Below, piece by piece: positions 2,451 through 35,354 of a DNA stretch of 64,000 nt. The notes under the pieces were generated by a model. It ran no database searches and was not told where the DNA came from. It saw only the letters and a program-made list of their open reading frames with translations. The stretch is from Diadema antillarum (taxonomy: Eukaryota): contig NW_027272591.1 in assembly GCF_040938485.1 (NCBI RefSeq), positions 248,001 through 312,000 of the forward strand, read 5' to 3'. The stretch's first letter is position 1; the number at the start of each line of letters is the position of its first letter. A program made the position numbers and the translations under genes.

Positions 2451-5378
2451 AGAAAACGGATAAAGAGAGAAAGAAATAATGTTCCATGCGTTAAAATGAG
2501 CCATCATCCATCACGAAATAAATTGACATGCAATAAAATATCCCTTCAGCTTAAACAGTGTTTACTGCGAAGAACATTCGTCAATAAATATTATTTGTAC
2601 ACACATAAATACGATTGAAATATTTCATTTCGCCACCATTTTCATTCACTTATGAATAATAAAAAAAAATCAGGAATGTGTAATCACATGAAACAAAATG
2701 ATTAGAGTGAATTACTCATGGCAGGATTTTTGTTCGATTTGCATTGTTAGGTAGTTTATACGCATACTTATTATAATAAATAATCTTAGTTTGAAACTTT
2801 CAACACATATTTTACATAGCAATCATTATAATTATTCATGGGTGTTACATTATGTATACATTTGCATCTCTATCATTAATTATTTTGTTTTTATTTACAG
2901 AATATCTTATAATCTGTTATCCATTATTCTGAAAGAGGCTGCGCTTAGTTAAAAGCGTAATACGGAAGCCGCTGATAGTTGTTTTTCTTTTTCTCAGCTA
3001 TAAATAATTAGCAGCTCTAAAATTACAAGATTGATGTAATATAGACACAATGTCCACACCTCTGTATCACTGCATACTTGTGTCAGTAGCGTCAATTCTC
3101 AATGCGCCATCTACGTTTGTGTATAGGCCTATAATGAAACACATATATACCTGTACTAGTACTAGCTTGTCTTGGGTTGGTATACTATCTTATATGCTAT
3201 ACAATAAATTCAGATATCTTGATAAAGAGACAATGCACCATTTACAGATACTAGTAAAAACAAGATATCAATGACCATAAACTATTAATCAAACAGTACG
3301 GCTACCTAACAGTTGATATCAAACAGTCAATAAAAAAAAAAAATTATATCTGCTTATATTTCAAAGGCACATGATGGGTTATCGACCTTGTAATATATGC
3401 TTACACACTCGTACTCCTGGGCTATTGGTCTTCAATATTTGCGTACTTTGATTCACACTTTGACAATGTCCAATATTTCGCACTGATCTCTTTGGATTGC
3501 TGAACGACATGTCATCCTTTATGATACATTTTTAGCCATCGATGTAACTGCGGTTTTCCACTTCGAAAATACATGATGAAGATCAGTCAATGTTCAGTAA
3601 GATTCTCCAGTCAACTAATCAAAATCACGATATATAGCGATATCTAAATAAAAAAGTAATTAAAAAAAGAAAAACTGCATTATACCTTCCCGTTACGTGC
3701 TAAACTTAACCTTATTTTGTTCTCAACCTTACTTAGCTCTCTTTCTGTTAGACCATCTCATCAACTTGTTGAAATAAGGGAAACAAACACCAACTTGATT
3801 TGTCGTCGGGTAATTGGAAACTGCATGGTCATACACTGGCACAAAACAGAGTTAGCAAAATAAGGACAACCATGCACTGTGGCAATTCTGAGTACTGTAA
3901 CTGCGCATTACCATCTCAACATAACGCCTTTTATCTATAATGTTTCTTCAGAGGACATTAAGAATTTTACATAACGTGTTGGGGCTATATTACGCATCAC
4001 GTATACTAGGTAGCACAGCTGTACCTTTACATTTCCAGCCATTGTGAGGAATGCGACGAGGAACACAGCCATCATTGACCAGTATAATAGTTAATTACAT
4101 ATACCTGCACGTTTCCCAACACCTAAGGGTAGCGACCATGTGCCTCATGCCAGCAACCGTCTCTTTAGAGTTTTATTTCCGACTAATACATTTGTAGTAC
4201 AAAGTACATCTACTTCATTTCAACGCCCCCCCCCCCCCCCCCCCATGCCAGAACAGAGTCCCCACATAATTATACTAGTATAGTAGGCGTATAGAGACGC
4301 TACCTGAATGCTGAATACTAAATGCGTTACGGCGCCCTCTGTTTTGTACCGTATTTTGACCATAAACATGAGGTAATGTATTGTAATGTGAGGGACACTA
4401 ACTTTGCAAGTCGAACTGAGAACTTTGTTAACGAAACATTGTAGGTTCGGTGCTCTATTTACTATGTAAAATTGTATTTCTTAAGCCTTGGTGAGAAAGA
4501 AAAATGTTCAATTTTACCTCTAACGAAACATAACGAGATATCTGTGATCATTTTTTTTTTCTTATAGATATTATTCAATGTTTAGGGACGGTGGATTCTT
4601 ATTTCGCTGCAAAAAGTTTTATTTGCGATACTGTAAAGAGAATCCAAAGAGTATACTTTAATAGGGACTTTCTGATCAGTATTTGAGATTACTTTCATTT
4701 ACTAACGATATTTTCATAAAACTGCTCATTCAATATGACATGCATGCAACCACATACACCACCAATTTTTAGGCAATAGATATCTTCAATTTCAGTTGGA
4801 CACTGGAACAAATTTACTGAGGTTATGTCACGATGAAATAAATACACTAGTGTACTCAGTTCTTGCGCCTTCCATAGCGCTATTAGTATTGACACAATGA
4901 ACTGATTTTCACTACGCTAACTTCACATCAGAGTTTACAGGACTGTCTTCGCATTCGTATGAAATTAATTTTACTCGCTGTTAAAGATGAGACATGATAA
5001 AACGTCCTCAACATTGCACTACGGATATGCATTTTACTTGCAGATACCCTAACATAAATGAATAATCGAAACAAGAGTAGTTTGAATACGTACATAAGAA
5101 TACTTTGTAGTTTTATATGACGCGATATGCATGCAAATAAATGGAATGAAAATTTATCGAAATAATATTTCAGAGAAATATGTGACCCTTTGACTAATTT
5201 CCAAGACATTCTTTGAATCTCATATCAGTATAACTGGGTCTGTAACAATACGAAGAATTGCTGATTAGTTGATGATTGTTTGTACCTCGCAAAATACAGC
5301 AGTCAATCTAACGTATGTAACATTCATTTAGACTGGAGTTCAACCCACGGGAAGCATAATGCCTCTATTCCCACTCTA

Positions 5379-19195: not shown

Positions 19196-19322
19196 GTCAC
19201 GTGACAGCAGCAGCTTCAGCTATAATGTTCGAGGCGCAAGATGGCGCCCTACCTATTTTTGTTTTGCTAGGCTCTCCGCTGTGCTGACATTGCGCATGCC
19301 CACTAACGTTGCTAGGGTAAAC
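19196..19322 (+). promoter_or_regulatory. TTC25/ODAD4 proximal promoter motif cluster
   Basis: E-box GTCACGTGAC 19196-19205, YY1-like CAAGATGGCG 19237-19246, NRF1-like TGCGCATGCC 19291-19300, RFX X-box-like GTTGCTAGGGTAAAC 19308-19322. All lie within 300 bp upstream of the ATG at 19497. Confidence 0.55.
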
Positions 19323-19496
19323 GTACAGGTAGGTGTCACACAGTCAGTGCAGTGGGTAGTGTATTGTGAATGCGAAGTTGCTCCATGTGTGTGTTATGAA
19401 TGGGCGAAGTTCGATCGAAGGTGTAAGGAGGACCGAAGGGCCGAATAAAATCAATATTATTTCCCTTTCACCAAAAAAGTTTTGGCCTCTTCCAAG

Positions 19497-19619
19497 ATGA
19501 TTGTAGGTGAGGAACATGATGAAGCGCTTTCCAGGGAATCTTTCGCCATCTACATGGCGGAAGGGGACGTCCTTTTTAAGCAAGGAGAGTACAAGAAGGC
19601 CCTGCAGAGTTACTCCACG
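19497..19619 (+). CDS. TTC25: TTC25 exon 1a
   Basis: MIVGEEHDEALSRESFAIYMAEGDVLFKQGEYKKALQSYST, donor ACG|GTGAGT, phase 0. Confidence 0.88.
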
Positions 19620-20545
19620 GTGAGTCTGTGTGTGTTCGTTGACATGATCAATCATATTTATAAGGCACCGTATATTCTGGTTCTGGTTCTGGTTGGGTTC
19701 TGCGCAATCACTGCCTGAAGGCTGTTATCCCGCGCAGCCGGTGTGAACGGATTTATTTCTTAAAATTTTAAATTCTGAAATGAGCTTTTTTGACCAGCTC
19801 TTCTACATTGAGAATTACGGGTATAGCCAGATTATTATATTATCAATGCAGACCCTTCGGCCAAATTAGAATAAATAATGGTTATGGGGCTAAGGCCTAA
19901 GGGCAAAATCTTAATGAATCAGATCTAACTAGCTACAAAATTATGATTTTTGTAGTAGAAATAGGACCCTAGTCAGCTCAGACATTGTCAATGCCAATGG
20001 CATGCCTAACGCCAGTAACGCCATCAACGGTTAACGGAGATTCTATTCACTCAGCAAGTCAAGCCGTGTTTTCCTCCACACATCTGGTCGCAAGTTTGCA
20101 GGGCTTTGGGTGACAGCCCAGGGAGTCTTTATCATGTGAACCTTGTTACAGAAAACATCTGCTAAGAGTAAGAGACTCTTGCTTATGCACACTTACAATG
20201 TAAGTGCTGACGCCTGAGAGACTGACATGGCATAGACCTAGTGATGGCTTGGTCAAATACCATTAAGAACTGCCATGAATGCCATAAGAATGATTTTCAG
20301 ACAATTTCGTAAGATCTTCCTAAGCGTAAGAAGGCCCTACAAAACCCCGAGTTCGTAGACCGTTCGTAAGTTTGTAGCCGGGTCGATGGTCGTCTTCAAA
20401 ATTTTTTCAATTTCGTACGAACCCCTCTCTTCACTTCGAAAGGCGGCCGTACGAACTCCAGAATTCGTACCAACAGTGACATTTGTACAAACGCATCGTT
20501 CGTACGAACCTTTGTGACCATAGCTTCACAACGTAGGCCGGAGAT

Positions 20546-20576
<31 letters not shown>

Positions 20577-23500
20577 ATGACCTTTTGCACATGGAGTGTG
20601 AGCTCTTGATTCTGGATGCAAGTTTGCCAAGGCAGCGAATATATTCAGGGTCCCATATTCCATCCATGGTTTCATGTTTTAAGACAGACCCTACTTTTAT
20701 TGGAATTCACTTTTTACAAAATTCTATCTCTAGACAACCTTGAAGTTGAACATTCATTTTGATGGAAAACCAAAACAAATAAGCAAGTACTTACTCAATT
20801 ACACTATTCCTTTAAACAAAGAAGGTGATGACTTTGAACCTTTTTAGCTGAGAGTGCATGGCATATTTGACAAATGAATGACATCAGAAGCTAATTCCAC
20901 AGTGATAAAGTGTATGGACTTCTGTTTTTAAAGAGAGTTGCACCCTACAAAGTTTTAAGAGTATATGTTGCACAGGACATACCCCAGCTGTATTTTGGCA
21001 CTGTGGTTTTTAAAGGTTTGTTATTCTCACACTTGCCCTCCCACCCCTTTTTAAAAGTCTACCCGTCCTTCAAATCAATACCTCTCGATAATCATGATCA
21101 ATACGACTTTCCATGACAGACGGCTGTGGGCTGGTAGGTGAAAGTGAAGACTATAGGAAGGGAGAGATTATCCTTCAATCTATTGATGTTGTTCGTCCCT
21201 GCATGACAGTCCCTATTCTTTTTCGCATCATGAATATGCACAGCTGTTTGCCATAATCTGATAAATATGCATGAGGCTCTGTTGCTAGGACTTGAGTGAG
21301 GGCAAAGGGGCTTGTGTACAAATCAATGGTGAAACAAAATGGTTGCACGCTGTCTGCAGTAGCCGTATATGTGGAAGTGCACAGACCAAGGGCTCTACAG
21401 GGAAAATACTCATTTTGACAAGCAATCTGTGTGAATTTGATCACATCCATGATGGATGAATACGTGGATCCAGCGCTAGAGCGGGAGGAGCAACTGAAGC
21501 TCCTACAATCCTACATCGGAGAAGCAGAGGACCACATGAGAAAGAGGGACTACAGGCGGGCAATGGAGGGCTATAACTTAGTATGTAAACAACATGGCTG
21601 CCACTGTGAAAGGCGGTCACTAAATCCTGTGTTGCTGCGTGATGTGCCTCCCAGCTTATAGAACAGAGAGTGCTAAAATGTTATCCCTGACCCTGTTCCT
21701 TCATTTGACAAATGAAGTATACAATGGGTTTTACTTAGTTGTGTTAGTTGTGTTGAGTTGTGAAATTATGAACATATTAAGATCATAACAACTTGGTCAC
21801 TCTCTAGGGTATGCCCAAGAAAATATGAGTAGATGTTTTTAACCTTCATGTAATGTTTCATGACGATTGGTTTCATCAGCTGCTGCACGATATCTTTGAA
21901 CACATGCGTGACAATTTTTGCTGCAGAACAGCTTATTGTGTTGGTACAGTCCTTAGCTAGACAGTTTTCTTGGACGCATACTAACCCAGAACAGTAAAAC
22001 CGTGTGTTTGCGCGTGTGTGTGTGTATAAAAGCATGGTACTATAAAAGTGGAAATTTTGCACATTTCGCTTGACCAGGTACTAGCATGAAAATAAAAGCA
22101 TGCCAATATGTACCACTACTAACTGTCTTGTTTCTGCAGGATTAAACACACACTAAATTGATCTCCTCTGGCCCAATGCAAAAAATTACTTGCGCAAAAT
22201 TATCCAATTTTACAGTTTTCATTCAATATGTAATATATCTTAATTGACTACTTACTTGAGAGAAGCATGTTGCTTGCACAATTTGTGAGTATAGAAAAAA
22301 GAAACAAAAGCAATGTCAGTTATAAATCTTCTGATTGATTATGACAATGGAACCAATGTAGGAATGGAGAAATAAGCTCGATCTGTTTCACAGTGCCAAA
22401 ACGACGGAAGAGACTATTCTGCAGAGAGCACAGTGAGATCTTGTTGACAGTTAAAAAACAAACAAACAAACAAAAAATAATAATTATGTATGCCAGTAAT
22501 GGCATTCAGCACATTTCTTCATTGTCAAATATGTCATTGCCAATGTGGTCATTACATTATCATTATTCTATAATTTCTAATTCTATTCATTGTATTCTTC
22601 ATCTGTTACCAGGCCCTGGAAATAGAACCGACAGACAAGAATTGCCTGGTGGCCCGCTCAAAGTGTCATCTCCAGCTTGGTGACTCCAAGGCAGCCCTCA
22701 AGGATGCTGAAGCAGCACTGGAGGATGATGAAAAATACATCAAGGTATTCAATAATGGCCTTTTGTCATTTACATGTAGAGTCCATTACCAGCTTTTAGC
22801 GTGTCTAGTCTTTGTATGAAACAAATTCTTGCTACGTTGGACAGTTGTAGGCATGTGAGCCGTAAGGCATAACGTGGATGATGTCTGTCGATGTGGCCAT
22901 ACACTGTATTTGTATCTCATTGAACAATACATGAAACTTTTTTCTTACATTTGTGTCAAATTAACAATTCATGACTCGTGAGCACATCTATCAACGCAAA
23001 TAGGTAGATGTGCTCTAGAGAAATTGCTATGATTATATTTTGTCATTCTTAATTGAGAACACCATGTTTCCAGCACCTGAATAAGTTCATTTGTATTCCA
23101 TTGAAGTTTCATTTTACTTTATACAGCAAGTAGTATACCTATCTATGCAAACTTTTTGTATGTGCACTGAATGCAAGATACCTTTGACAAATATTTACAA
23201 AGTTGATTCCGTCTTATTTCCCTGACTATGATTAATAGCAGCTCATCCTTCACATGAAGTATTTGAAAATAGCCATGGTGCCACGGTGCCAGCGAATGAA
23301 AGCACTGCAAGCAAGACCTAAATCTAAATATAATCTGTCCATCTGGTCACATGACAGGGTTCAATGCAGAAAACTCTGAATATAAATATTTAAATTTGAA
23401 TTTTGATTTGAACTTGGTCACTTGACAGGGTCTGTACCACAAGGCAGAGGCCCTCTACCAGATGGGCGACTTTGAGATGGGCCTGGTCTTCTATCACCGT

Positions 23501-26500
23501 GGAAACAAGCTGAGACCCGAGCTACAAGAGTTTCGTCTCGGCATCCAGAAAGCACAAGAAGCCATTGATAACTCAATAGGAAGTGAGTGCAATCTGTGGT
23601 AGATAATCAAGCAGAAGAAAATGTAATTGCTTTGTATGGATTATTCTTCCAAGTTGTGGGCAATACTTATCAAGGAAACATGGCAACTGAGATGCTTTTC
23701 ACATTTCATAATGGTTAGATTCTTCCTATCTGTCTCCTGTTATTACATATCTCATCATCAAATGTTCTCCATTACTGTATATGGTGTTAAGTATTAGCCA
23801 GTCTAATTTTTAGCCAGTTGAAACTCAGATCCTGGCAATTATATGAATGGCTAGATTCACAATCCTTGAGTACAGCAATGAGCAGAAAAATGCACAGGGT
23901 TGTATGCATACTTATGTCACATGATAATTACATACCTGGATCAGAGTCAATACTTTTGTGCATTATTGAATTCACAAATGTGTAGCAGCCTACTGTGCAA
24001 AATTCGTGAAAACAAAACCCCATGAAATATATATGGTGATTACAGCAAATATGCATATATTGTGACACAAAAATCTAAAGAATCAAGCATTTGAACACAC
24101 AACCTCCCAGCAAGAGTTTGGCCAGCTCCAAAGGAACATTATATCATGTCCACTTCAGGTACAGGAAATAATTTTTGAGAAGAGCATACTGTGCATTGTT
24201 TTTGTGGCAAGTAGGAGTAATGCAAATTTTGTTTTTTATTTCAATCTATTCCCAGGTCCATCAAAAGTCAAGCTAGAAAACAAAGGAGATCTATCATTCT
24301 TCACAAAACAAGATGAGGTAAGCGTCACTTAATCTTGTGTGTTTCAGACATAGAACTTAGACTGTGATGAAGTTAACAGTCTAAAACTATAATAGCCATT
24401 ATGTTTAAATTCATAAAATGTAGGGCAATTTGTCAATCAGTTGCAAAGCCATTATGTTGTTCATGATATCAAGAATGAATATCAAAATACTTCACAATTT
24501 CTTGGCAATTTTTTTATCGCTCGTTCTACTTACTGGTACTGTGTTACTATTTCATTAGGCAAGTTTTCTGTTAGAGAATTGAAAGATAGAACTGATTTAA
24601 AGGGAATGCAAACCCAAAGAGCAATGTGGATTGAGTGAAAGCAGCAACATTAGCAAAGCACATCAGTGAAAGTTTGAGGAAAATCGGACAATCAATGCAA
24701 AAGTTATGAATTTTTAAAGTTTTGGTGTTGGAACCGCTGGATGAGGAGACTACTAGAGGTTATGACATATGAGTGGACAACAATACCAAGAACATATAAA
24801 GGAAATTCAACAAAAATTCACTTTTCTAGCATCATGAAAGAGCACTTGACTAACCGCTGTCAGAAAACTGGGGAAATAATTGCTACCCTTAACATATGTC
24901 AGTATCAAGTTGAATGGAATTTGTAATTTTCATGAAAAATGATTTTTTGTGAAATTTTCTTTATATTTCCTTTATATTGTTGTCCACTCATACGTCATAA
25001 CCTCTAGTAGTCTCCTCATCCAGCGGTTCCAACACCAAAGCTTTAAAAATTCATAACTTTTGCATCAATTGTCCGATTTTCTTCAAACTTTCACCGATGT
25101 GTTCTATTAACATTGCTGCTTTCACTTAATCCACATTGCTCTTTGGGTTTACCTTCCCTTTAACATTTTGTTGTATATATCTTAATATCTGATGAATGCT
25201 TGAATGTGCTCACTGTCCCCATGATTGATTTCTGCCAGGCCAAAAGCAAGAAGCCAGCCAGGATGGGCTACAGCAAGCCCATGGCCAAGCAGCAAGAGAA
25301 CAAGAAGAAGCGGCCCACCAAGCCGGAGCAGACTGACGCCGAGAAAAAGACGGCCAAGCAGCTCCTGGGTGAACTCTATGCTGACAAAGAATACCTCGAC
25401 ATGCTTCTCAGAGATGACGGTAAGTGCAGTCTGCAGAAAGCGATGTCCGTTACTTCCACCAGAAGTCCTGAGGCTCCTTAAAGTGCATCAGTCGGTCACC
25501 AAGAAAATTTCTGTGACTAGAATGTTAGCTACGGACTGTCATTAGGTGCTTTACACACACAACCACTTTGGCATACACTGAAGTTGGGCAACATGGCCCA
25601 TAGTGATCTAATATACTGACAACCATGAATGTTGTAAAGACAACTGTATTATATGATTGATTACAGGGTTTGACACTAAATTTTATTGTCCTGTTTGGGC
25701 CACTAAAATTTTACATTTGAAGCTTTGGTGCCCCCCAAAATAAATGCTTTGGCCCAACATACGGGAAATATAAGAATCCGTTTTGAATCTTTGTTGCCTG
25801 ATACAGGCTATCAAAAGATAACTTTTTATTTTGTAGCCCAACATCAATTTTCAGTGGCCCCGGGCCTTCAAGCCACTACTAATGTAATGTTGAGCCGTTG
25901 ATTAGCATGACAAGGCATGACATGATTTGTTTCTAAGATTATAAATCGTCGGTTGAGAATGATAAGGGCATTAAGTGACCACAAAACCCATAGTGTTCGA
26001 GAAGACTTAAAGCCCTTCTCATTCTCAACAGACGAAATGTAGCTATAATTAGGGTAGATCTCCTTTTCCTACCCTATGTGGTGTCATTTCACCCAGATTA
26101 ACATTGTACGGGTAATTGTGCAACATGATTAAAAATGTCTGTAATGTTTTGTTTAACACCATGTCCTTCCAGAATGTCTTCATGTTTTATAGTGTGTATG
26201 TGGATAAATGCAAAACTGTTGTGAATCATTTGATTGATTCTGATGTGAAAACTTGGCATCATTATTACATGGAAGAAGCACAATCGTTCAGATGGTAATA
26301 AGGTAAACTTAATGCAACATTATCTTGGCTGAAACCTGTGGATCCGTCTTGATCAAAGCTGCATTGTTGATAGCCATAGTACTATGAACTATAGGCATTA
26401 GTCATCCAAAATCTTTTGTGACTACTTTTTACAATCCTTCAGAAGAAAAACACTAGAGTACTGTAGAATGAGGAATGTTTGCATCAATTTTAATTTCTCA

Positions 26501-27261
26501 AGAGCCAAGATTTGCAAAGTTATAATGCATGCAAAAGTCCTTGTCTACCCTATATGCATTGAATGCCAGAGGCATTTCACAAAAATTTTATGCCATGAGA
26601 AAAGCTGTCAGCTCCTCACAAATATTTCATGCCACAAAAGTATTTTGCTGTACAGTATACCTGTCTCTCTCATATTTGCCCACTGTATTTTCTGTGCATT
26701 TTCAGTCACATGCAAGCAATCAGTCACTACTCAGCATGTATCACAAAGTATAGTTTCTCAGTAGCTTTAAAAAAACCCAATTAATTCCTTCCAGACACTT
26801 CCACAGAGTTGCATATATTTGTATAGCTTCTGCAATAGCAACAACGGTTGTTGCTTGCGTAATGAGTCTAACAATGTATGCATACATTTTCCTTGTCAGA
26901 CTTAACGAGAGCTGACACAGACAGCGGAAACCGAATCTACGACCTCGTGAACGAGGGCCTGCAGTATCTCGACACGAGGACAGAGTTCTGGCGGCAACAG
27001 AAGCCGATGTACGCCCGTAAGAGGGAGAAGGAGGAGGCGAAGGGGGCAAGGGAGAAGAACAAACAGAAACCAGCCGATCCTGCCAAGTACATCCTCAAGA
27101 ACCTAGAAGACATTGATGCAGGTAAGGAGACTTACTGTGGTGATGGTGATGGGGATGGTGACGGTGATGGTGATGGTGATGGTGATGGTGATGGTGGTGG
27201 TGATGATAATAGTGGTTATTATGGTGATGATGATGATCACAATGTTGATCATGATAGTGAC

Positions 27262-27295
<34 letters not shown>

Positions 27296-30200
27296 ATAGG
27301 ATTATTCATGACGTTCATGAGGAGGAGGAGGAGGATGATGATGATAAAGATGATTTTGTTACTAGATGACAATGTAAGGATAGTTATATTTTCAAAGCTG
27401 CACAGGGAGGAACTTTGTTTGGAAGCCTATGAAGGGGTTACAGACTTACTACCCATTAAATTTGTTTGATCATCAGTGTGGAACTACTTCTAGTCACTTT
27501 GAAAAAAAACAACAACACACAATTCATATCAAAATTAGATTATGCATCAGCTCTCCAAACTATGCATAGTATCTTAAAACTGTAGCACGCACTCAAGACA
27601 CATAGATATTCTTTGTGTATGACTTATTTATTTTTTTAAAAGAAGAAAAAAAAAAGGGCCAGTTGATAGCATAGGATGATAATTGCCTCATCTTGATACC
27701 TTCCATATCCAGCCCTGGCTGACGGCAGACCACGTGATGCTCTACGGCAGGCCCAGAAGGTCCTAAGGAATGTGGAGGGCTGGTCGCAGGACGACGTGCC
27801 AGAGAAACAGGAGTTCATTGCCAACTTGCACAGCTGCATCGGCAACGCATACCTCGACATGGGCAAGATGCCGGATGCTCAGCAGAACCACCAACGGGAC
27901 CTGGACATCTCCAAGGACAAGTGAGTTTCTGCAACAGAAAGAAAAAAAGAGATTAAGGAAACAATCAACGTGTTTTTCATGAATTCTTCTTCTCTTTTCC
28001 TTTATTTTCATGTGTAGCTTTGCTCATTCACCAGGTTCATTTTATTGCTACAAAGAACAATTCGAGTAGTCAGAAATTCTGAATGTAAAGCTGAATTCAT
28101 TCTGAAAAAGGGAATTACTGAAAACTTGACATCCAGCTTGAACTGCAATGTGCTGGTTCCAGGTCCCCATGTCATTTAATGATTAAGTTGCACAGACTGA
28201 ATGTTCGTGGTGTACCAACTGTGCAAGGACCTTGACATGGTTTCTGTATTTCCAATGTTGATATTCTTGACAACGCTAATGGCAATGTCATTATTGTGTC
28301 TTTCTGTTTGATGCTATGTTTTACATGTGTGTAATTACATAAAAAAAATGAATTGATGTTATACTTCTGTTTTGCAGGTTAAATATAAGAATAGCACAAT
28401 GTATGAGGTTGAAGGACTGTCCAATCAGTTATCTTGGATTACAGCTTACAGCAACGATAGAGCCTCAACTTCATTTTTTATTTGGAAGTTTCTATTTTAT
28501 CTATTTTCCCAATAAAAGCGATAATGAGGAAGGCAGGTCGCGGGCGTTGGATAACCTGGGTCGCGTGTACGCCCGCATCGGCAAGTTTGACGCGGCCGTG
28601 GCGCACTGGTCAGAGAAGCTACCACTGGTCAAGTCGGCGCTGGAAGGCACCTGGCTGTACCACGAGATCGGCCGCTGCCACCTGGAGCTGGGCGACTACC
28701 AGGAGGCCAGGGACTGTGGCCAGAAGAGTCTCCAGGCAGCCCAGGAGGCCGGGGACGACGTGTGGCAGCTCAACGCCAGCGTGCTCATTGCCCAATCAGA
28801 AGGTACCGATCCCTTAATGTCATTTTTTTTCCCCTTATCGCCATTTTCACTTTATGGACGCACTTTACATGATGCTACATTGATTTATATGTATTACTGT
28901 ATACGCTATTATTTTTCGCGTACAGATATTTTCGCGAATTACGAGGTCATAGACATTTTCGCGAAGCGATGCTGACCTTTATGTTAATGTCGTGTTAACA
29001 AAGTGCATTTAGACATTTTGGCAGGTTGTTAAAGCTGTGATCCAACAGTGATTCGCGACATGTGCGAAAATGCCTAAATTTTGTTACCTTTATTTGAATG
29101 TTATTATTGTGAATGCGCTGTAAGCACTTGCTATCTCAGTCCTTTTTAGCTGTGTAGCCTGCCTGTTTGAAGAGGGATGCAAACCAGTTTTGTTTTCGTG
29201 CATGCTCTCATTCGACCAATGAATAAATTGTCCTCAAGTACCAGACAACTGTGATTGTTGACCCCTGACCCCTAACTCTTTTCCTTCTTCTTTTTTTTTT
29301 TTCATTTCAGTCAAGCTGGGTGATCTCCAGGAGGCTATTGAGTCCTTCGAGCGTGCCCTTGAGATGGCCAAGGTCCAAGGGGACGAGCCGGCCCAGAAGG
29401 CCATCTCCAAGGCCCTGGAGGACCTCAATGAGAAGATCGTCCAGGGGCTGCAGGAGAAGGAGGCGGAGGGAGACGTCCTACCGGAGGAGCAGGATGGACA
29501 GAAGAAGGAGGAGGAGGAGGAGAAGAAGGAGGAACAGAAAGAAGAGGAAGGTGAGTCATTGGAGTAGAGTCGGTGCCAGTGTATTGCTTGTGTGGAATAT
29601 GGACCTACATGTATGATGGGTGAAGTAACATGCATCATTCGGACAGGGATCCATAGAGCCCCGTTTCATGATAAAAGTTGCTATGATTGTAACTCTTGCT
29701 GCTGGAGTGGCAAATGTCATGGTAACGACAAAAATCCAGCATCCTGATTGGCTGTTACTGCAAGAACTTGCTTTTCTATCAAAACTTAATATTCTAACAT
29801 CTTTTATGAAATGGGGCCCTGATTTCTGTCCGGTGCATTCTTAAAAATCTTTCAATCTTCTTTTTTTTTTCCGGGGGGGGGGGGGATCAGGGTCAATACC
29901 ACACCTTTACTGGTTATCTTTTGGGGAAAAGGGCTTCACAAGACAGAGAGAAAGATGAAAAAAAAAGGCAAAGGTTGTTGTATCTTGTGTTGAGAGGAAA
30001 GAATGTGTTGATGTGAGGTAGAGAAAAAGAAGGAAGGTAGAATTCAGTGAGATTAAAAAGCTATGTGAGAATAGACTACTAAGTATATTTGTACATGTAC
30101 ATGTACAATTGAAGTTTCCACCATATACATGTTAATGAGGATGAGTCCACCTTCATATACATGTAGATTGAATGAATGCATCAATATTAGTATTACACAT

Positions 30201-33200
30201 CAGTTAAAGTTTGAGGAAAATTGGACAATCCATTCAAAAGTTATGAATTTTTAAAGCATCTGCGCAGTCACTACTGGATGAGAAGACTACTACAGTGTAT
30301 GATGTCACATACGTAGAATGATATTCAAAAAAATATAAAGAGAATTTCACAAAATTTAATTTCTTGAAAAAATGCAAATTTCCTTGACTTGTCACTGACG
30401 TACAAAGGGTAGTATTATTCCCCCTGCCTACTGAAAGAGGTAAGTCAAGTGTTCTTATCTTATGTGAGAAAAGCGAAAATATGTTGAATTTTCTCTATAT
30501 TTTCTTTTTATCATTCTACACAATGTGACAACACAAGCGGTAGTAGTTCTCTCATCCAGTGATGGCGACACTGAAATTTCAGTGGGCAAAGATAAGCCAA
30601 TGTGATCTTTGGCATTTTGAGTCAAGTCTTGAGCTGTACATTTGTATGTTGTTGGTGGGTGTGTGTGTGTGTATTTTTTTTCAGTGATAAAGAGCTTTTG
30701 ATAGATGCACTTTGCATTCCGTCACTCTGATTGGAAGCATGACAGAGCAATTCAATGAGACAAGCTCGAGCTTGATATGTCTCGAGCTGGGGATCAGCAA
30801 ACTTCATTAAGATCAGTTAAAAATTTGAGTACTGTAAAAGTGGATATTTTCGCGCAACTAATTTTTCACACTCGGCCATGTGAGATGAGTTTCATGAGCT
30901 TTAAATTCTGCAGAATCAAGACATCAACTACTGAATATGGCGAGCAAAAATTGTTTGCATGCTTTTATTTTCGCGCTAGTTTCTGGTTGCGTGAAATGCG
31001 CAAATAAAATTTCAACACCGCGAAGATTTCCACTTTTACAGTACATGTGCAGATTAACGCTCTCTGTCGACCAAGGGAATAATTTTCAAATGAGATTTTG
31101 ACATTGCCATCCATGTGCATTTGGAATATACAAGTGTATGATGTATGAAAAATCCCTTCCAAAAGCACCTCGTGTCCATCGCGGAATAAAGATTAGCAGT
31201 CAGCAAAAAGAGGAAGAGGCTAACGATGCCGAGGTGGATGTTGGTCAGGCGAAGGAGGAGGAGAAGCCTGAGGAGGCGGAGGTTCCTCAGCAGAAGGAAG
31301 ACGACGTACAACAGAAGGAGGAGGAGAAGGAAGAGAAAGCGAAAGCTGATGGTGAAGACACTTTGTGTGGCTGGATGTTTAAATGTGTCATTATATATAC
31401 CCTCATCCTTGCTTCATCACATCATTGGTGCTTTTCATATATATCTCGACATCAATCCCCCACCCGCTCTCCTTACCTTTCCTGACATCCTGTTCCATTG
31501 TCTGAAGATATTCCTCTAGTATTTAATCTTTTGCAAGCGCATTATTTCACCAGGTCGGGATGCACTTTACAAAGTGTTTCGTCGTTGTGAAATCCTGTGT
31601 CACCGTTCCTTCTTTAAATGTTCTTCAAATGAAATGGAATTTTTCTACAGATTTGAATAGGTTGAATGGATGCTTTTGAATACCTAATGATCGTTCAATT
31701 ATTTCAAAACATTGAGTCTTTCATATTAAAACTATGAAGCTCATGAGACACAAGAAAACCCCTCCCCCTCCCCTCACAAAAGAAACAAACCAAAAACAAA
31801 AACAGCCCTAGAGGATTCTAGTAGGCTTGAATGAAATTACTGGTATGTGATTTCTCGTTCGACTAGTGACAACTCCTGTACGTTTTTCAAGGTCCTAATG
31901 CCTGTCCTAACTATTGCTATCTGAATCATACCACTCAAGTCACTTGACACATAAGAGAATCAAGTTGCTGAAAGTTACTAGGTGTAATGAGAGTGCTGTG
32001 ACCTTAGTATAATTACTCTCCAAGTTCTCTTTACTTTATTGATTAGGCATAGAGAATTCCTTGTTTTTGCATACGATAAATAACAATTCCACGAATGTAG
32101 TACATCACGCTGTGCAGCCTGGTGATATAATCAAGTGCTTATGATGGCTATTTCACAGCATGCTGTAGTTAAATTGACCATATGACTGCATACTCCTACT
32201 CACATTCACTTGTTGGTTGGATCGTGATGGCACAGTAACACGCCTCTTCCATCATTGCTTCATGTTGACTTGCTACTGGCTTTAATCCCTTGTGCTGGTA
32301 CAATGTAGATATTTTCACATCCTCAAGACACCATTCAGCGTTGTATGTAATGTTTGTGCAAAGCTACTAGTCTTGCTCTAGTCTAATATACATTTAGGCA
32401 TATTGTATATTACGAGAGATTGGCTGCATTTCAGGCCAGGAACATGCGTCATCTTTTTTCATCTTCACAATTTGAAAGCCTCTCACCCTCCCTCCCCCCC
32501 CCCCCCCCCCAAAAAAAAAAGAGAAGCAGACAATTTAAGAAATGCACAAAATTTATATTGATATCCTGTAGACTTTGAATAAGACAAATAACTTTCAAGA
32601 CAAGGAACCTTCATGCATTGTCCGGATGATTAAAAAGGACTAAAATCGATTTTCATACAGAATAGCTATGTCTGTGCTTTTTTTTTTTAAAGTGTAGATA
32701 CAAAGCACCTCCTTCTAAATGTGCAGTTTATTCATTGCTCCCCACACAGCACATTATCTGGATCTGTTTATGTTGCATACACTTTAATTTGAAAAGTAAC
32801 CCATTCTTGGGTTGCTTATTTTGAGCGAGTTAAAACATGCAACACTTGTGCTGTGTTACTTGCCTTTGCAACTCGCATTCTCTGCACTTATCTCCCCTCA
32901 TAACTTCAGTACATGTACAGTGTTCTGAAGTAAGCATAGCTCACCGTCAGCAAACCTGAGTAAACGAACATGCCACATACAATAATTACTCTTTTTGCCG
33001 TCACTGGACATGTGACTATATTCCCACTCCTCATTGTTGATCGTGAGATTTTTTTTCCCCCATGCAGATTAATTCTGGAAAAACTCTACTAAGCTTTTAT
33101 GACTATTAACTTCTAAGGCATGTGTGGAATATTTGTTTTTGTTTTTTGTTTTGTTTTTAATTGGTTAATCAATACCATTACCAAAGCATCTTTTTGATAT

Positions 33201-35354
33201 TTAAGGGATTGCTCCATACTTAAGATGGGAGATAGAGCTAACAAATCAGAGCCAGCGTTTGAAGAGGAGATATTTCTTCACGCCAGTGTTTGAGTGTTTT
33301 AATCACTCTTCTGTCCTTACTGCAAATTTCACAAATTTCAAACCTTCAAACGCGTACAATGCAATATGCTTTGATATGACTGGTGTTCCCACACAAGGTC
33401 ATTTGCCTTCAACAACCTCAAGTCAAACTATGTTATGTGGTAGATTATTCTTTAGAAGTAAACACATTTTTAGATTCTGCCTGTCACTGTTTATTCATGT
33501 ATATCCCACATACTCCTGGAAAAAAAAAATATCAGAAGTTTATAGTTTCAAAATGCATTGATCCAGGTTCAGATTTTTTTTTTCATGACATAACCATAAC
33601 CTGTCATCACATGTGGGTTGTGTGGAAACTAATTTCCTTTTTCACAGCTATATCAAATCTCTAAAATGTCACAGTTTGTAAAAGTTGCAGTTGGTGCAGT
33701 TTTGTTTTTGTTTTTTTGGCTGCTCTATTTTTTTTTTCATTATTGTATACATAACTTATTCTGAAGAATAACAAGAAATGTCATACAGTACTAGTGTTCA
33801 ATATTTCAATATCTTATCATTTAATTTCTTTATCAAAATATTGATTTTTGGTTAAAAATGAATCAGAAGACTGATAAACTTAATCAGGTGGCAAAGAAGT
33901 AAAAACAAAATTTTCCTTCCACAATAAGGTAATGCATGGTTTTACAAAACGCTTTTCAAGTTTTTAACAACTTTATATATCATTCAATATTCAAAGAAGA
34001 AAACAGGAATGGGGGTGGGGGGAGATATGCCATTGACACATTTACTCACTTCTGGGGGGTGTTTCATCAACATTTGTCAGCACTGACAAGTTGTCAGCAC
34101 TGACAATTTCAGCAAAATCCATAGTTTTGATTGGCTGAGATGCTCTGGTCACTGACTGTTACTATCATGGTGATTGTCAGCGCTGACAAACGTTGATGAA
34201 ACACCCTCCAGATTAATTACTTAGACGCATATCCAATCGTAAGACATCAATGCATTTTCAGAAAGAAAAAAGAAAAAAAAATGCCCTATTTTTCTTCTTA
34301 GTGTGCACTTTTGATATAAAATATCTTTGACAAGAGAAGCAAAGCATGGAAGAAATGAACTAAGGGCACTTTAGGACAGTATTTTTGTTCACTTTATTAC
34401 TGAGCAAAACTCACTGGCAAATTCCAATGCTGGCCAATCACGCAGACTCTCGCAGCAGTAGTAGGTCGTCCAAGTCCAAGGCCAGTAGCAGGAGCAGCAG
34501 CCGTTCGTCCCACCGCAGCCGAAAGAAGAGCGGCAGTAGCAGCTCTGATGACGAGTCCAAGAAGGATGGCAAATAGTTACGCCAAAGAGGTGAAAGATTT
34601 CTCACGCTGGAAGTTAGCAAGGAGGGTTAACAACAACAACAACAACAAAATTTTGTATTTAAGGTGTAGGGAACAGGAATGGGGTAGGGACATGAGAGTG
34701 TGTTCTATGAGTAAGCTTATGAGTCTTTAATTGCTGAAACACACACATTTTCTATGATACTTCCAGTTTTAAGGAGGTGGGGTGGGGAGGTTTTTTTTCT
34801 TCTTCTTTTTTTCCTTTTTTAAGGGGGTAGGGAAGCAAAGATGGATTTCCTTGTTCTTACTTGTAGCTTCTACATGTATCTTTCCACTATTTCACAGACA
34901 TGCAATGTAGGAAAATTTTCCTCAAATTTAGTTTGCGACGGTCGAAATGGCTATACACGCATGACTCTGCATTCAACTGGCATTCAGCTGGCATTCAGCT
35001 GACAGATGCACCTTTGTTGTTTTTCTCATCAAAAATCAAATGTCAACAGTAGATGCCAGTATGAGTGAACTGAAGTGCAATCACACAGAATTGTGAATGA
35101 TGATGCCTTTGTAGACAAGCAGAAACATTGCCAGTGAAAAGACGGTACATCGCAAGTGAGAACCCAAAATGGGTCATTCTTCACGTTTATCAGAATGTGC
35201 TGAGAAAATGCTGGACCTTGAGACTACTACTTCAAATCTCTAATTTGTTGTTAGTGTCTGTCAAGGTCAACATACAATTTTTTTTTCTGTGCCAGGTACA
35301 TAATGGAGATTCCTTGTTCTAGTCCCTTTCCCTCTTTCCATCTTTTTCTCCCCC

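Follow-up and report, generated by a model that had tools for sequence, protein, structure and literature searches.

The stretch of DNA analysed here, hereafter the window, comprises 64,000 nucleotides of the sea urchin Diadema antillarum (positions 248,001 to 312,000 of contig NW_027272591.1, assembly GCF_040938485.1) and contains the orthologue of ODAD4, also named TTC25, in which two different exons can each provide the start of the protein. The identity of the gene is established by its exon at 28517-28804, which matches the structure chains 8j07_m9, 7rro_I1 and 9cpc_1C (E 2.7e-35 to 2e-34), i.e., ODAD4 of the solved bovine, human and porcine axonemes. Moreover, the predicted protein XP_071481076.1 (P0257; 'outer dynein arm-docking complex subunit 4-like [Diadema antillarum]') aligns with the window exon by exon at ~100% in tblastn. 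ODAD4 has Pfam TPR_1 and TPR_2 matches, with an N-terminal domain of three tetratricopeptide repeats (TPRs) and further TPRs after it.

Organization of the 5' region of ODAD4

The 5' part of the gene contains the following elements:

19289-19325, forward strand: conserved promoter block 5' of exon 1a, with GCGCATGC and the X-box-like GTTGCTAGGGTAAAC, 89% identical over 37 nucleotides to positions 3815-3851 of the Strongylocentrotus purpuratus locus (L011)
19497-19619, forward strand: coding part of exon 1a, with its ATG at 19497 and 41 codons ending in ...QSYST, followed by the phase-0 donor GTGAGT at 19620
21261-21293, forward strand: conserved block 5' of exon 1b (ATATGCATGA...TGTTGCTAGGACTT), 82% identical over 33 nucleotides to S. 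purpuratus (E 0.001)
21416-21418, forward strand: in-frame TGA, read in the window, closing the 1b frame 5' of the ATG
21449-21580, forward strand: coding part of exon 1b, with ATGATG at 21449 and 44 codons ending in ...EGYNL
21581-21586, forward strand: phase-0 donor GTATGT of exon 1b, all seven genomic loci having a GTA[AT]G donor at the corresponding codon boundary
22613-22746, forward strand: exon 2, in phase 0 after ...ttaccag (15/20 pyrimidines), the acceptor shared by both first exons

The annotated protein XP_071481076.1 starts with exon 1a, its residues 1-41 being 100% identical to the translation of that exon, and exon 1b lies ~1.8 kb further downstream. As the donors of 1a and 1b are both in phase 0, either exon can be joined in frame to exon 2 at 22613. 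An earlier note on this DNA had proposed this layout of exons 1a and 1b, the double ATG, the upstream stop and the phase-0 donors matching exon 2, all of which are read directly in the sequence. Its statement that exon 1b has no phase-0 acceptor is correct upstream of the ATG but not inside the exon, where in-frame AG dinucleotides allow possible exon starts at 21482, 21488 and 21491; the pyrimidine tracts preceding these AGs in Diadema are poor, with 7-9 pyrimidines out of 20 versus 15/20 for exon 2. The same note had assigned the first TPR helix to each first exon. This has to be amended, each of them encoding helix A and the greater part of helix B in the first TPR, and helix B being completed by exon 2. 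Regarding the start codon of 1b, the tandem ATGATG at 21449-21454 is peculiar to Diadema among the species compared; the second ATG (21452) is the orthologous start, with which the single ATG of the other species aligns in a -3A/+4G context.

Conservation of exon 1b

When the 44-residue peptide of exon 1b was used in a word search, five short open reading frames (ORFs) were found on other contigs with 81-93% amino-acid identity, and all of them diverge immediately after ...NL, which is the donor position. Four other genomic loci of Ambulacraria show the arrangement 1a - 1b - exon 2: those of S. purpuratus (L011) and Saccoglossus kowalevskii (L012) and, among the contigs long enough to show it, a strongylocentrotid urchin contig (L001) and an Apostichopus japonicus-like one (L002). 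Two further contigs carry 1b alone. The start signals are likewise preserved: 8 out of 8 1b loci have -3A and +4G around the ATG, and their frame is closed by a stop 9-57 nucleotides before it.

Nei-Gojobori comparisons gave low proportions of nonsynonymous differences (pN) for exon 1b, ranging from 0.04 to 0.18 with synonymous sites saturated (proportions of synonymous differences, pS, of 0.6-1.0). Between Diadema and the strongylocentrotid urchin, pN was 0.042 for 1b, 0.070 for 1a and 0.078 for exon 2, with pS of 0.70-0.85, and in the comparison with the A. japonicus-like contig it was 0.106, 0.159 and 0.107, respectively. Among seven sequences, 28 of the 44 columns of 1b are invariant. Exon 1b is also the best-conserved block of the 5-kb region between Diadema and S. 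purpuratus (84.8% over 145 nucleotides), and this block ends six bases into the intron. In the genomic DNA of a diverged relative, only 1 change occurs in the 132 coding nucleotides of 1b versus 10 in the adjoining upstream 93 nucleotides (Fisher P 0.0008), the single change in 1b being called synonymous from its codon position. Together, these comparisons support purifying selection on exon 1b, which is as constrained as the constitutive exon 2.

These data bear on the possibility that the 1b frame is open by chance, or represents a duplicated exon in decay, and has no function in Diadema. Intron 1 does contain many ORFs of similar length, 1b is unannotated in both Diadema species and no RNA run is found among those holding it. 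We nevertheless consider this explanation extremely improbable, and it was rejected as contradicted by the conservation data: the ORF, the ATG, the Kozak context and the donor are all intact in Diadema, the diverged relative differs by one synonymous change only, and conservation over about half a billion years has left saturated synonymous sites with few replacements. The earlier note had called for a search of the 1b peptide in related genomes combined with an analysis of nonsynonymous and synonymous changes; 1b was found there intact and with few replacements, neither absent nor frameshifted.

As a side observation, an exon 1b of echinoderm type is present on seawater metagenome scaffolds (L003-L007 and L009), with GTTGCYATAGAGC located 411-552 nucleotides upstream; these scaffolds represent animal DNA inside microbial metagenome assemblies.

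Age of the two N-termini

Intron 1 of the hemichordate S. kowalevskii (L012) contains an ATG-initiated ORF at 3591-3728 with 60-67% identity to echinoderm 1b (E ~3e-12), which ends at GTAATC and is preceded by an in-frame TGA. The presence of 1b in the same layout in Saccoglossus implies that the arrangement predates the echinoderm-hemichordate split, and the conservation of 1b covers about half a billion years. The 1a-type N-terminus is found in other phyla and in vertebrates, and the vertebrate sequences examined have a 1a-type start only. Judging from this distribution, exon 1a encodes the ancestral N-terminus of ODAD4, and the statement of the earlier note that 1a is closer to the vertebrate N-terminus proved to be right.

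Use of exon 1b as a protein start

A region-restricted search retrieved three full-length proteins in which 1b forms the N-terminus and exon 2 follows directly. Two of them are isoform X1 of S. purpuratus TTC25 (XP_011670214.1; older entry XP_003730621.1) and isoform X3 of A. japonicus (XP_071822237.1). The third one is a protein of 560 residues encoded by a 3,440-nucleotide JGI contig (L010), in which 1b runs directly into exon 2 within an uninterrupted ORF of 1,683 nucleotides, indicating that this contig derives from a spliced mRNA. Its 5' untranslated region (252 nucleotides) contains stop codons in every frame and no sequence similar to 1a, and alignments of this region with the genomic contigs L009 and L003 were at chance level only. 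The L010 protein has ~70% identity alike to echinoid, holothuroid and ophiuroid ODAD4 and ~63% to hemichordates, a pattern pointing to an echinoderm from a lineage otherwise unsampled here. As for 1a, it is the start of S. purpuratus isoform X2 (XP_030830887.1), of the Logan transcript P0280 and of the Ap58 cDNA. A degenerate DNA pattern for the 1b-exon 2 junction found no match in metagenome contigs; as L010 fits this pattern but was not retrieved either, this blank is uninformative.

A single model departs from this either-or usage. In Holothuria leucospilota, model P0241 contains 1a, 34 residues of 1b (residues 42-75) and exon 2, in frame. Since this 34-residue insert is exactly one TPR long, it deserves consideration that 1b might be mainly an internal cassette, 1a being spliced to the last 33-34 codons of 1b and these to exon 2 in order to add one TPR-length unit, and in-frame AG dinucleotides indeed exist inside 1b in every species. 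However, these AGs are by-products of GAG and CAG codons with at most 10 pyrimidines out of 20, versus 15/20 for exon 2, and the position of the Holothuria acceptor is not AG in Diadema. Moreover, the ATG, its -3A/+4G context and the M-D/E-Y-V-D-P codons are conserved with synonymous changes, which would be unexplained if translation started in 1a. The RefSeq isoforms and the mRNA contig L010, which carry either 1a or 1b, include no such combination and their 1b forms all start at the 1b ATG; P0241, which is a submitter's gene model and not a transcript, is alone in combining 1a with part of 1b. As the genomic contig L008 carries the full ATG-initiated 1b ORF, P0241 probably results from the erroneous joining of two alternative first exons. 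We thus regard the cassette as improbable and rejected it as the main form, the ATG-initiated form being taken as the selected one, although occasional co-inclusion of 1a and 1b may occur.

Conserved upstream blocks

Outside the exons, only the blocks at 19289-19325 and 21261-21293 align between Diadema and S. purpuratus, the rest of the non-coding sequence being unalignable; the second block is a candidate for the core of a second promoter. In agreement with the earlier note, which had pointed to a common motif upstream of each ATG, GTTGCTAGG is present at 19308 (-189) and 21281 (-168), both on the forward strand, and no third copy exists in the window, for a chance expectation of 0.28. Across species, GTTGCTAKGAYTT is located 130-168 nucleotides before the 1b ATG in Diadema, L001 and L002, and the same comparison revealed a second common element, CATGAATA, further upstream. 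In Saccoglossus, GTTGCTAGG is found at -114 of the 1a ATG and a near-palindromic GTTGCCTGCCAAC 109 nucleotides before the 1b ATG. With respect to the RFX X-box consensus GYTRYY N1-3 RRHRAC (PMC2375033), GTTGCY is the left half of the box, and GTTGCTAGGGTAAAC upstream of 1a, like GTTGCCTGCCAAC upstream of Saccoglossus 1b, is one position off. An X-box-like site is thus kept between distant species.

The base composition of the two upstream regions differs as the earlier note had described, with a CpG observed/expected ratio in Diadema of ~0.80 upstream of 1a and ~0.41 upstream of 1b. The same contrast is seen in three echinoderms, with 0.71-0.91 before exon 1a and 0.17-0.41 before exon 1b.

Many alternative first exons are purely regulatory. 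It could hence be that the second promoter alone matters, 1b being retained for an expression pattern and the difference between the two proteins having no functional consequence; the conserved upstream block that each first exon possesses and the CpG contrast in three echinoderms would be in line with such a role. We find this quite improbable, as selection on the 1b peptide is at least as strong as on 1a and exon 2, with 28/44 positions invariant across echinoderm classes, whereas a permissive N-terminus would be expected to drift.

Relationship and predicted structures of 1a and 1b

Comparison of the 1a and 1b family profiles by hhalign gave a P of 4e-4 and a probability of 35% over 23-27 columns, in register, with 19-22% identity. 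The ungapped 23-residue alignment of the earlier note was recovered independently by this profile comparison (22% identity, P 4e-4). The match, with its P of 4e-4, concerns a TPR segment of 23-27 residues and is indistinguishable from generic TPR similarity. When 1b was compared with the whole N-terminal domain, the sole match reported was the 1a segment, in register. These results weakly suggest that 1b may have arisen from 1a by exon duplication. A derivation of 1b from TPR2 or TPR3 was unsupported, the profile comparison having given the 1a segment only.

AlphaFold predicts two helices in both forms, the second one running across the exon junction, and a helix-turn-helix is predicted for 1b. 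For the 1a form, the predicted local distance difference test (pLDDT) score is above 90 over residues 11-130 and the model fits 3-TPR domains with a root-mean-square deviation of 1.0-1.4 Å.

Probable alternative first coding exons in Diadema ODAD4

Considering the conserved layout, the low pN with saturated pS and the 1b starts in relatives, we hold it very likely that the coding sequence of Diadema ODAD4 can start in either of two alternative first exons, each of which has an ATG and is joined in phase 0 to exon 2, and that 1b and its upstream block are kept by selection. The proposal of the earlier note that two alternative first coding exons have been kept under selection is thereby upheld. 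According to this model, exon 1a would supply the ancestral N-terminus of ODAD4, and exon 1b a different, highly conserved sequence in place of helix A, the larger part of helix B of TPR1 and the preceding tail. Exon 1b and the short block with its RFX X-box-like motif have been maintained by purifying selection from a time preceding the divergence of echinoderms and hemichordates. Diadema would transcribe 1b from its own promoter in intron 1, the upstream motif would bind RFX, and the two N-termini may provide different docking-complex contacts or serve different ciliated cell types.

Several points weigh against this interpretation. In RefSeq, both entries of D. antillarum and both isoforms of D. 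setosum are 1a forms only, leaving exon 1b unannotated in the genus, and the RefSeq 1b isoforms of the other species are computed models. Direct transcript evidence for 1b is that of L010, a single environmental mRNA contig from an echinoderm. In one search focused on 1b, three sequencing runs were found to hold this exon; they all come from one study, contain genomic DNA of the diverged relative and have no splice joints. Regarding the structure, the AlphaFold model of the 1b N-terminus has a modest pLDDT (60-74) and its superposition on canonical 3-TPR domains is poor; with such modest confidence, a difference in the TPR1 surface is not readable from the model. Finally, the echinoderm 1b sites are X-box half-sites (GTTGCTAKG) and, as the 1a site is itself one position off the consensus, RFX control is what we infer from this resemblance.

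Other features of the locus

The remaining coding exons of ODAD4, approximately delimited by tblastn of P0257, are as follows:

23426-23584, forward strand: coding exon
24243-24320, forward strand: coding exon
25236-25418, forward strand: coding exon
26899-27123, forward strand: coding exon
27712-27918, forward strand: coding exon
28517-28801, forward strand: coding exon
29310-29552, forward strand: coding exon
31165-31314, forward strand: coding exon
near 34430-34573: Ser-rich last coding exon

Two stretches of intron 1, at 20256-20569 and 21983-22296, are high-copy repeats, with a word depth in the thousands in the DNA runs of the relative versus ~20-60 elsewhere; a (CTG)4(ATG)8-type microsatellite is located at ~20545-20580, right after the first of these repeats. 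At 26872-27366, no stop interrupts the frame as it continues from the exon that ends near 27123 into the intron, through a long GAT/GGT-type run which would encode (GD)n and poly-D, and which looks like a non-coding intronic microsatellite.

Two nearly identical D. antillarum ODAD4-like proteins, XP_071481076.1 (P0257) and XP_071510620.1 (P0281), are encoded on different contigs of 460 kb and 587 kb, and may correspond to haplotigs or to a recent duplicate. In Lytechinus pictus, isoform X4 (P0221) has two extra residues (AL, residues 37-38) at the junction between 1a and exon 2, pointing to the alternative use of a donor or acceptor at a distance of six bases.

Comparison with known systems and significance

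The isoform pair described here is already known as predicted entries in two other echinoderms. S. purpuratus X1 (XP_011670214.1) and X2 (XP_030830887.1) have the same two N-termini as Diadema, with the same order 1a - 1b - exon 2, and A. japonicus has the same pair, X3 (XP_071822237.1) starting with 1b and X2 with 1a. Both pairs are predicted isoforms, and the D. antillarum and D. setosum annotations are without the 1b form. In the collection of literature searched, no paper on N-terminal isoforms of ODAD4/TTC25 was found. What is added here is the exon absent from the Diadema annotation, the conservation of this exon across Ambulacraria together with that of an upstream motif, and the evidence for selection.

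Arrays of duplicated first exons with their own promoters and common downstream exons are a feature of UGT1A and of the clustered protocadherins. Similarly, the first coding exons of ODAD4 each have an ATG and an upstream region and lead to common downstream exons. Unlike in these systems, there are two exons only, they encode part of a structural repeat and not a whole domain, and their homology is weak (22%, P 4e-4).

In the bovine axoneme, the TPRs of TTC25 and the repeats of ARMC4 form a solenoid bridge between the CCDC114/151 coiled coils (PMC8595878). The modelled chains of mammalian ODAD4/TTC25 (7RRO, 8J07, 9CPC and 9FQR) are 48-57% identical to the predicted sea urchin N-terminal domain, and vertebrate ODAD4 differs from that of Diadema by having a 1a-type start only in the sequences examined. 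Given the position of the TPRs in this bridge, replacing TPR1 would change one end of the solenoid.

In sea urchins, Ap58 of Heliocidaris crassispina sperm is the outer arm dynein binding protein (Ogawa and Inaba 2006, cited in PMC8595878 and PMC4427456). It is the ODAD4 orthologue with a 1a-type N-terminus (BAD38896.2) and, as a single cDNA, is silent on 1b; the presence of the 1a form in sperm is reported by the work so cited. The 1a type of Ap58 and the CpG pattern hint that 1a might be used in the germ line and 1b in somatic cilia; sperm flagellum versus larval cilia was the example given in the earlier note. Put more precisely, the CpG-rich promoter of 1a, probably unmethylated in the germ line, would drive expression for sperm, and the CpG-poor intronic promoter of 1b would be active in the somatic ciliated cells of embryos, larvae or adult epithelia, an assignment that we offer tentatively and consider somewhat unlikely. 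If it is true, the altered TPR1 would shift the partner surface to which ODAD4 binds and so tune dynein docking or its regulation between flagella and cilia.

With these data, an annotation gap in Diadema is corrected and a probable mis-join in Holothuria is flagged. ODAD4 is needed for the docking of outer dynein arms and its loss leads to primary ciliary dyskinesia in people. A second TPR1 variant kept for about half a billion years implies an isoform-specific role of the N-terminal end of ODAD4. As sea urchin sperm flagella and embryonic cilia can both be purified in bulk, exons 1a and 1b offer a natural variant pair for asking what the first TPR contacts.

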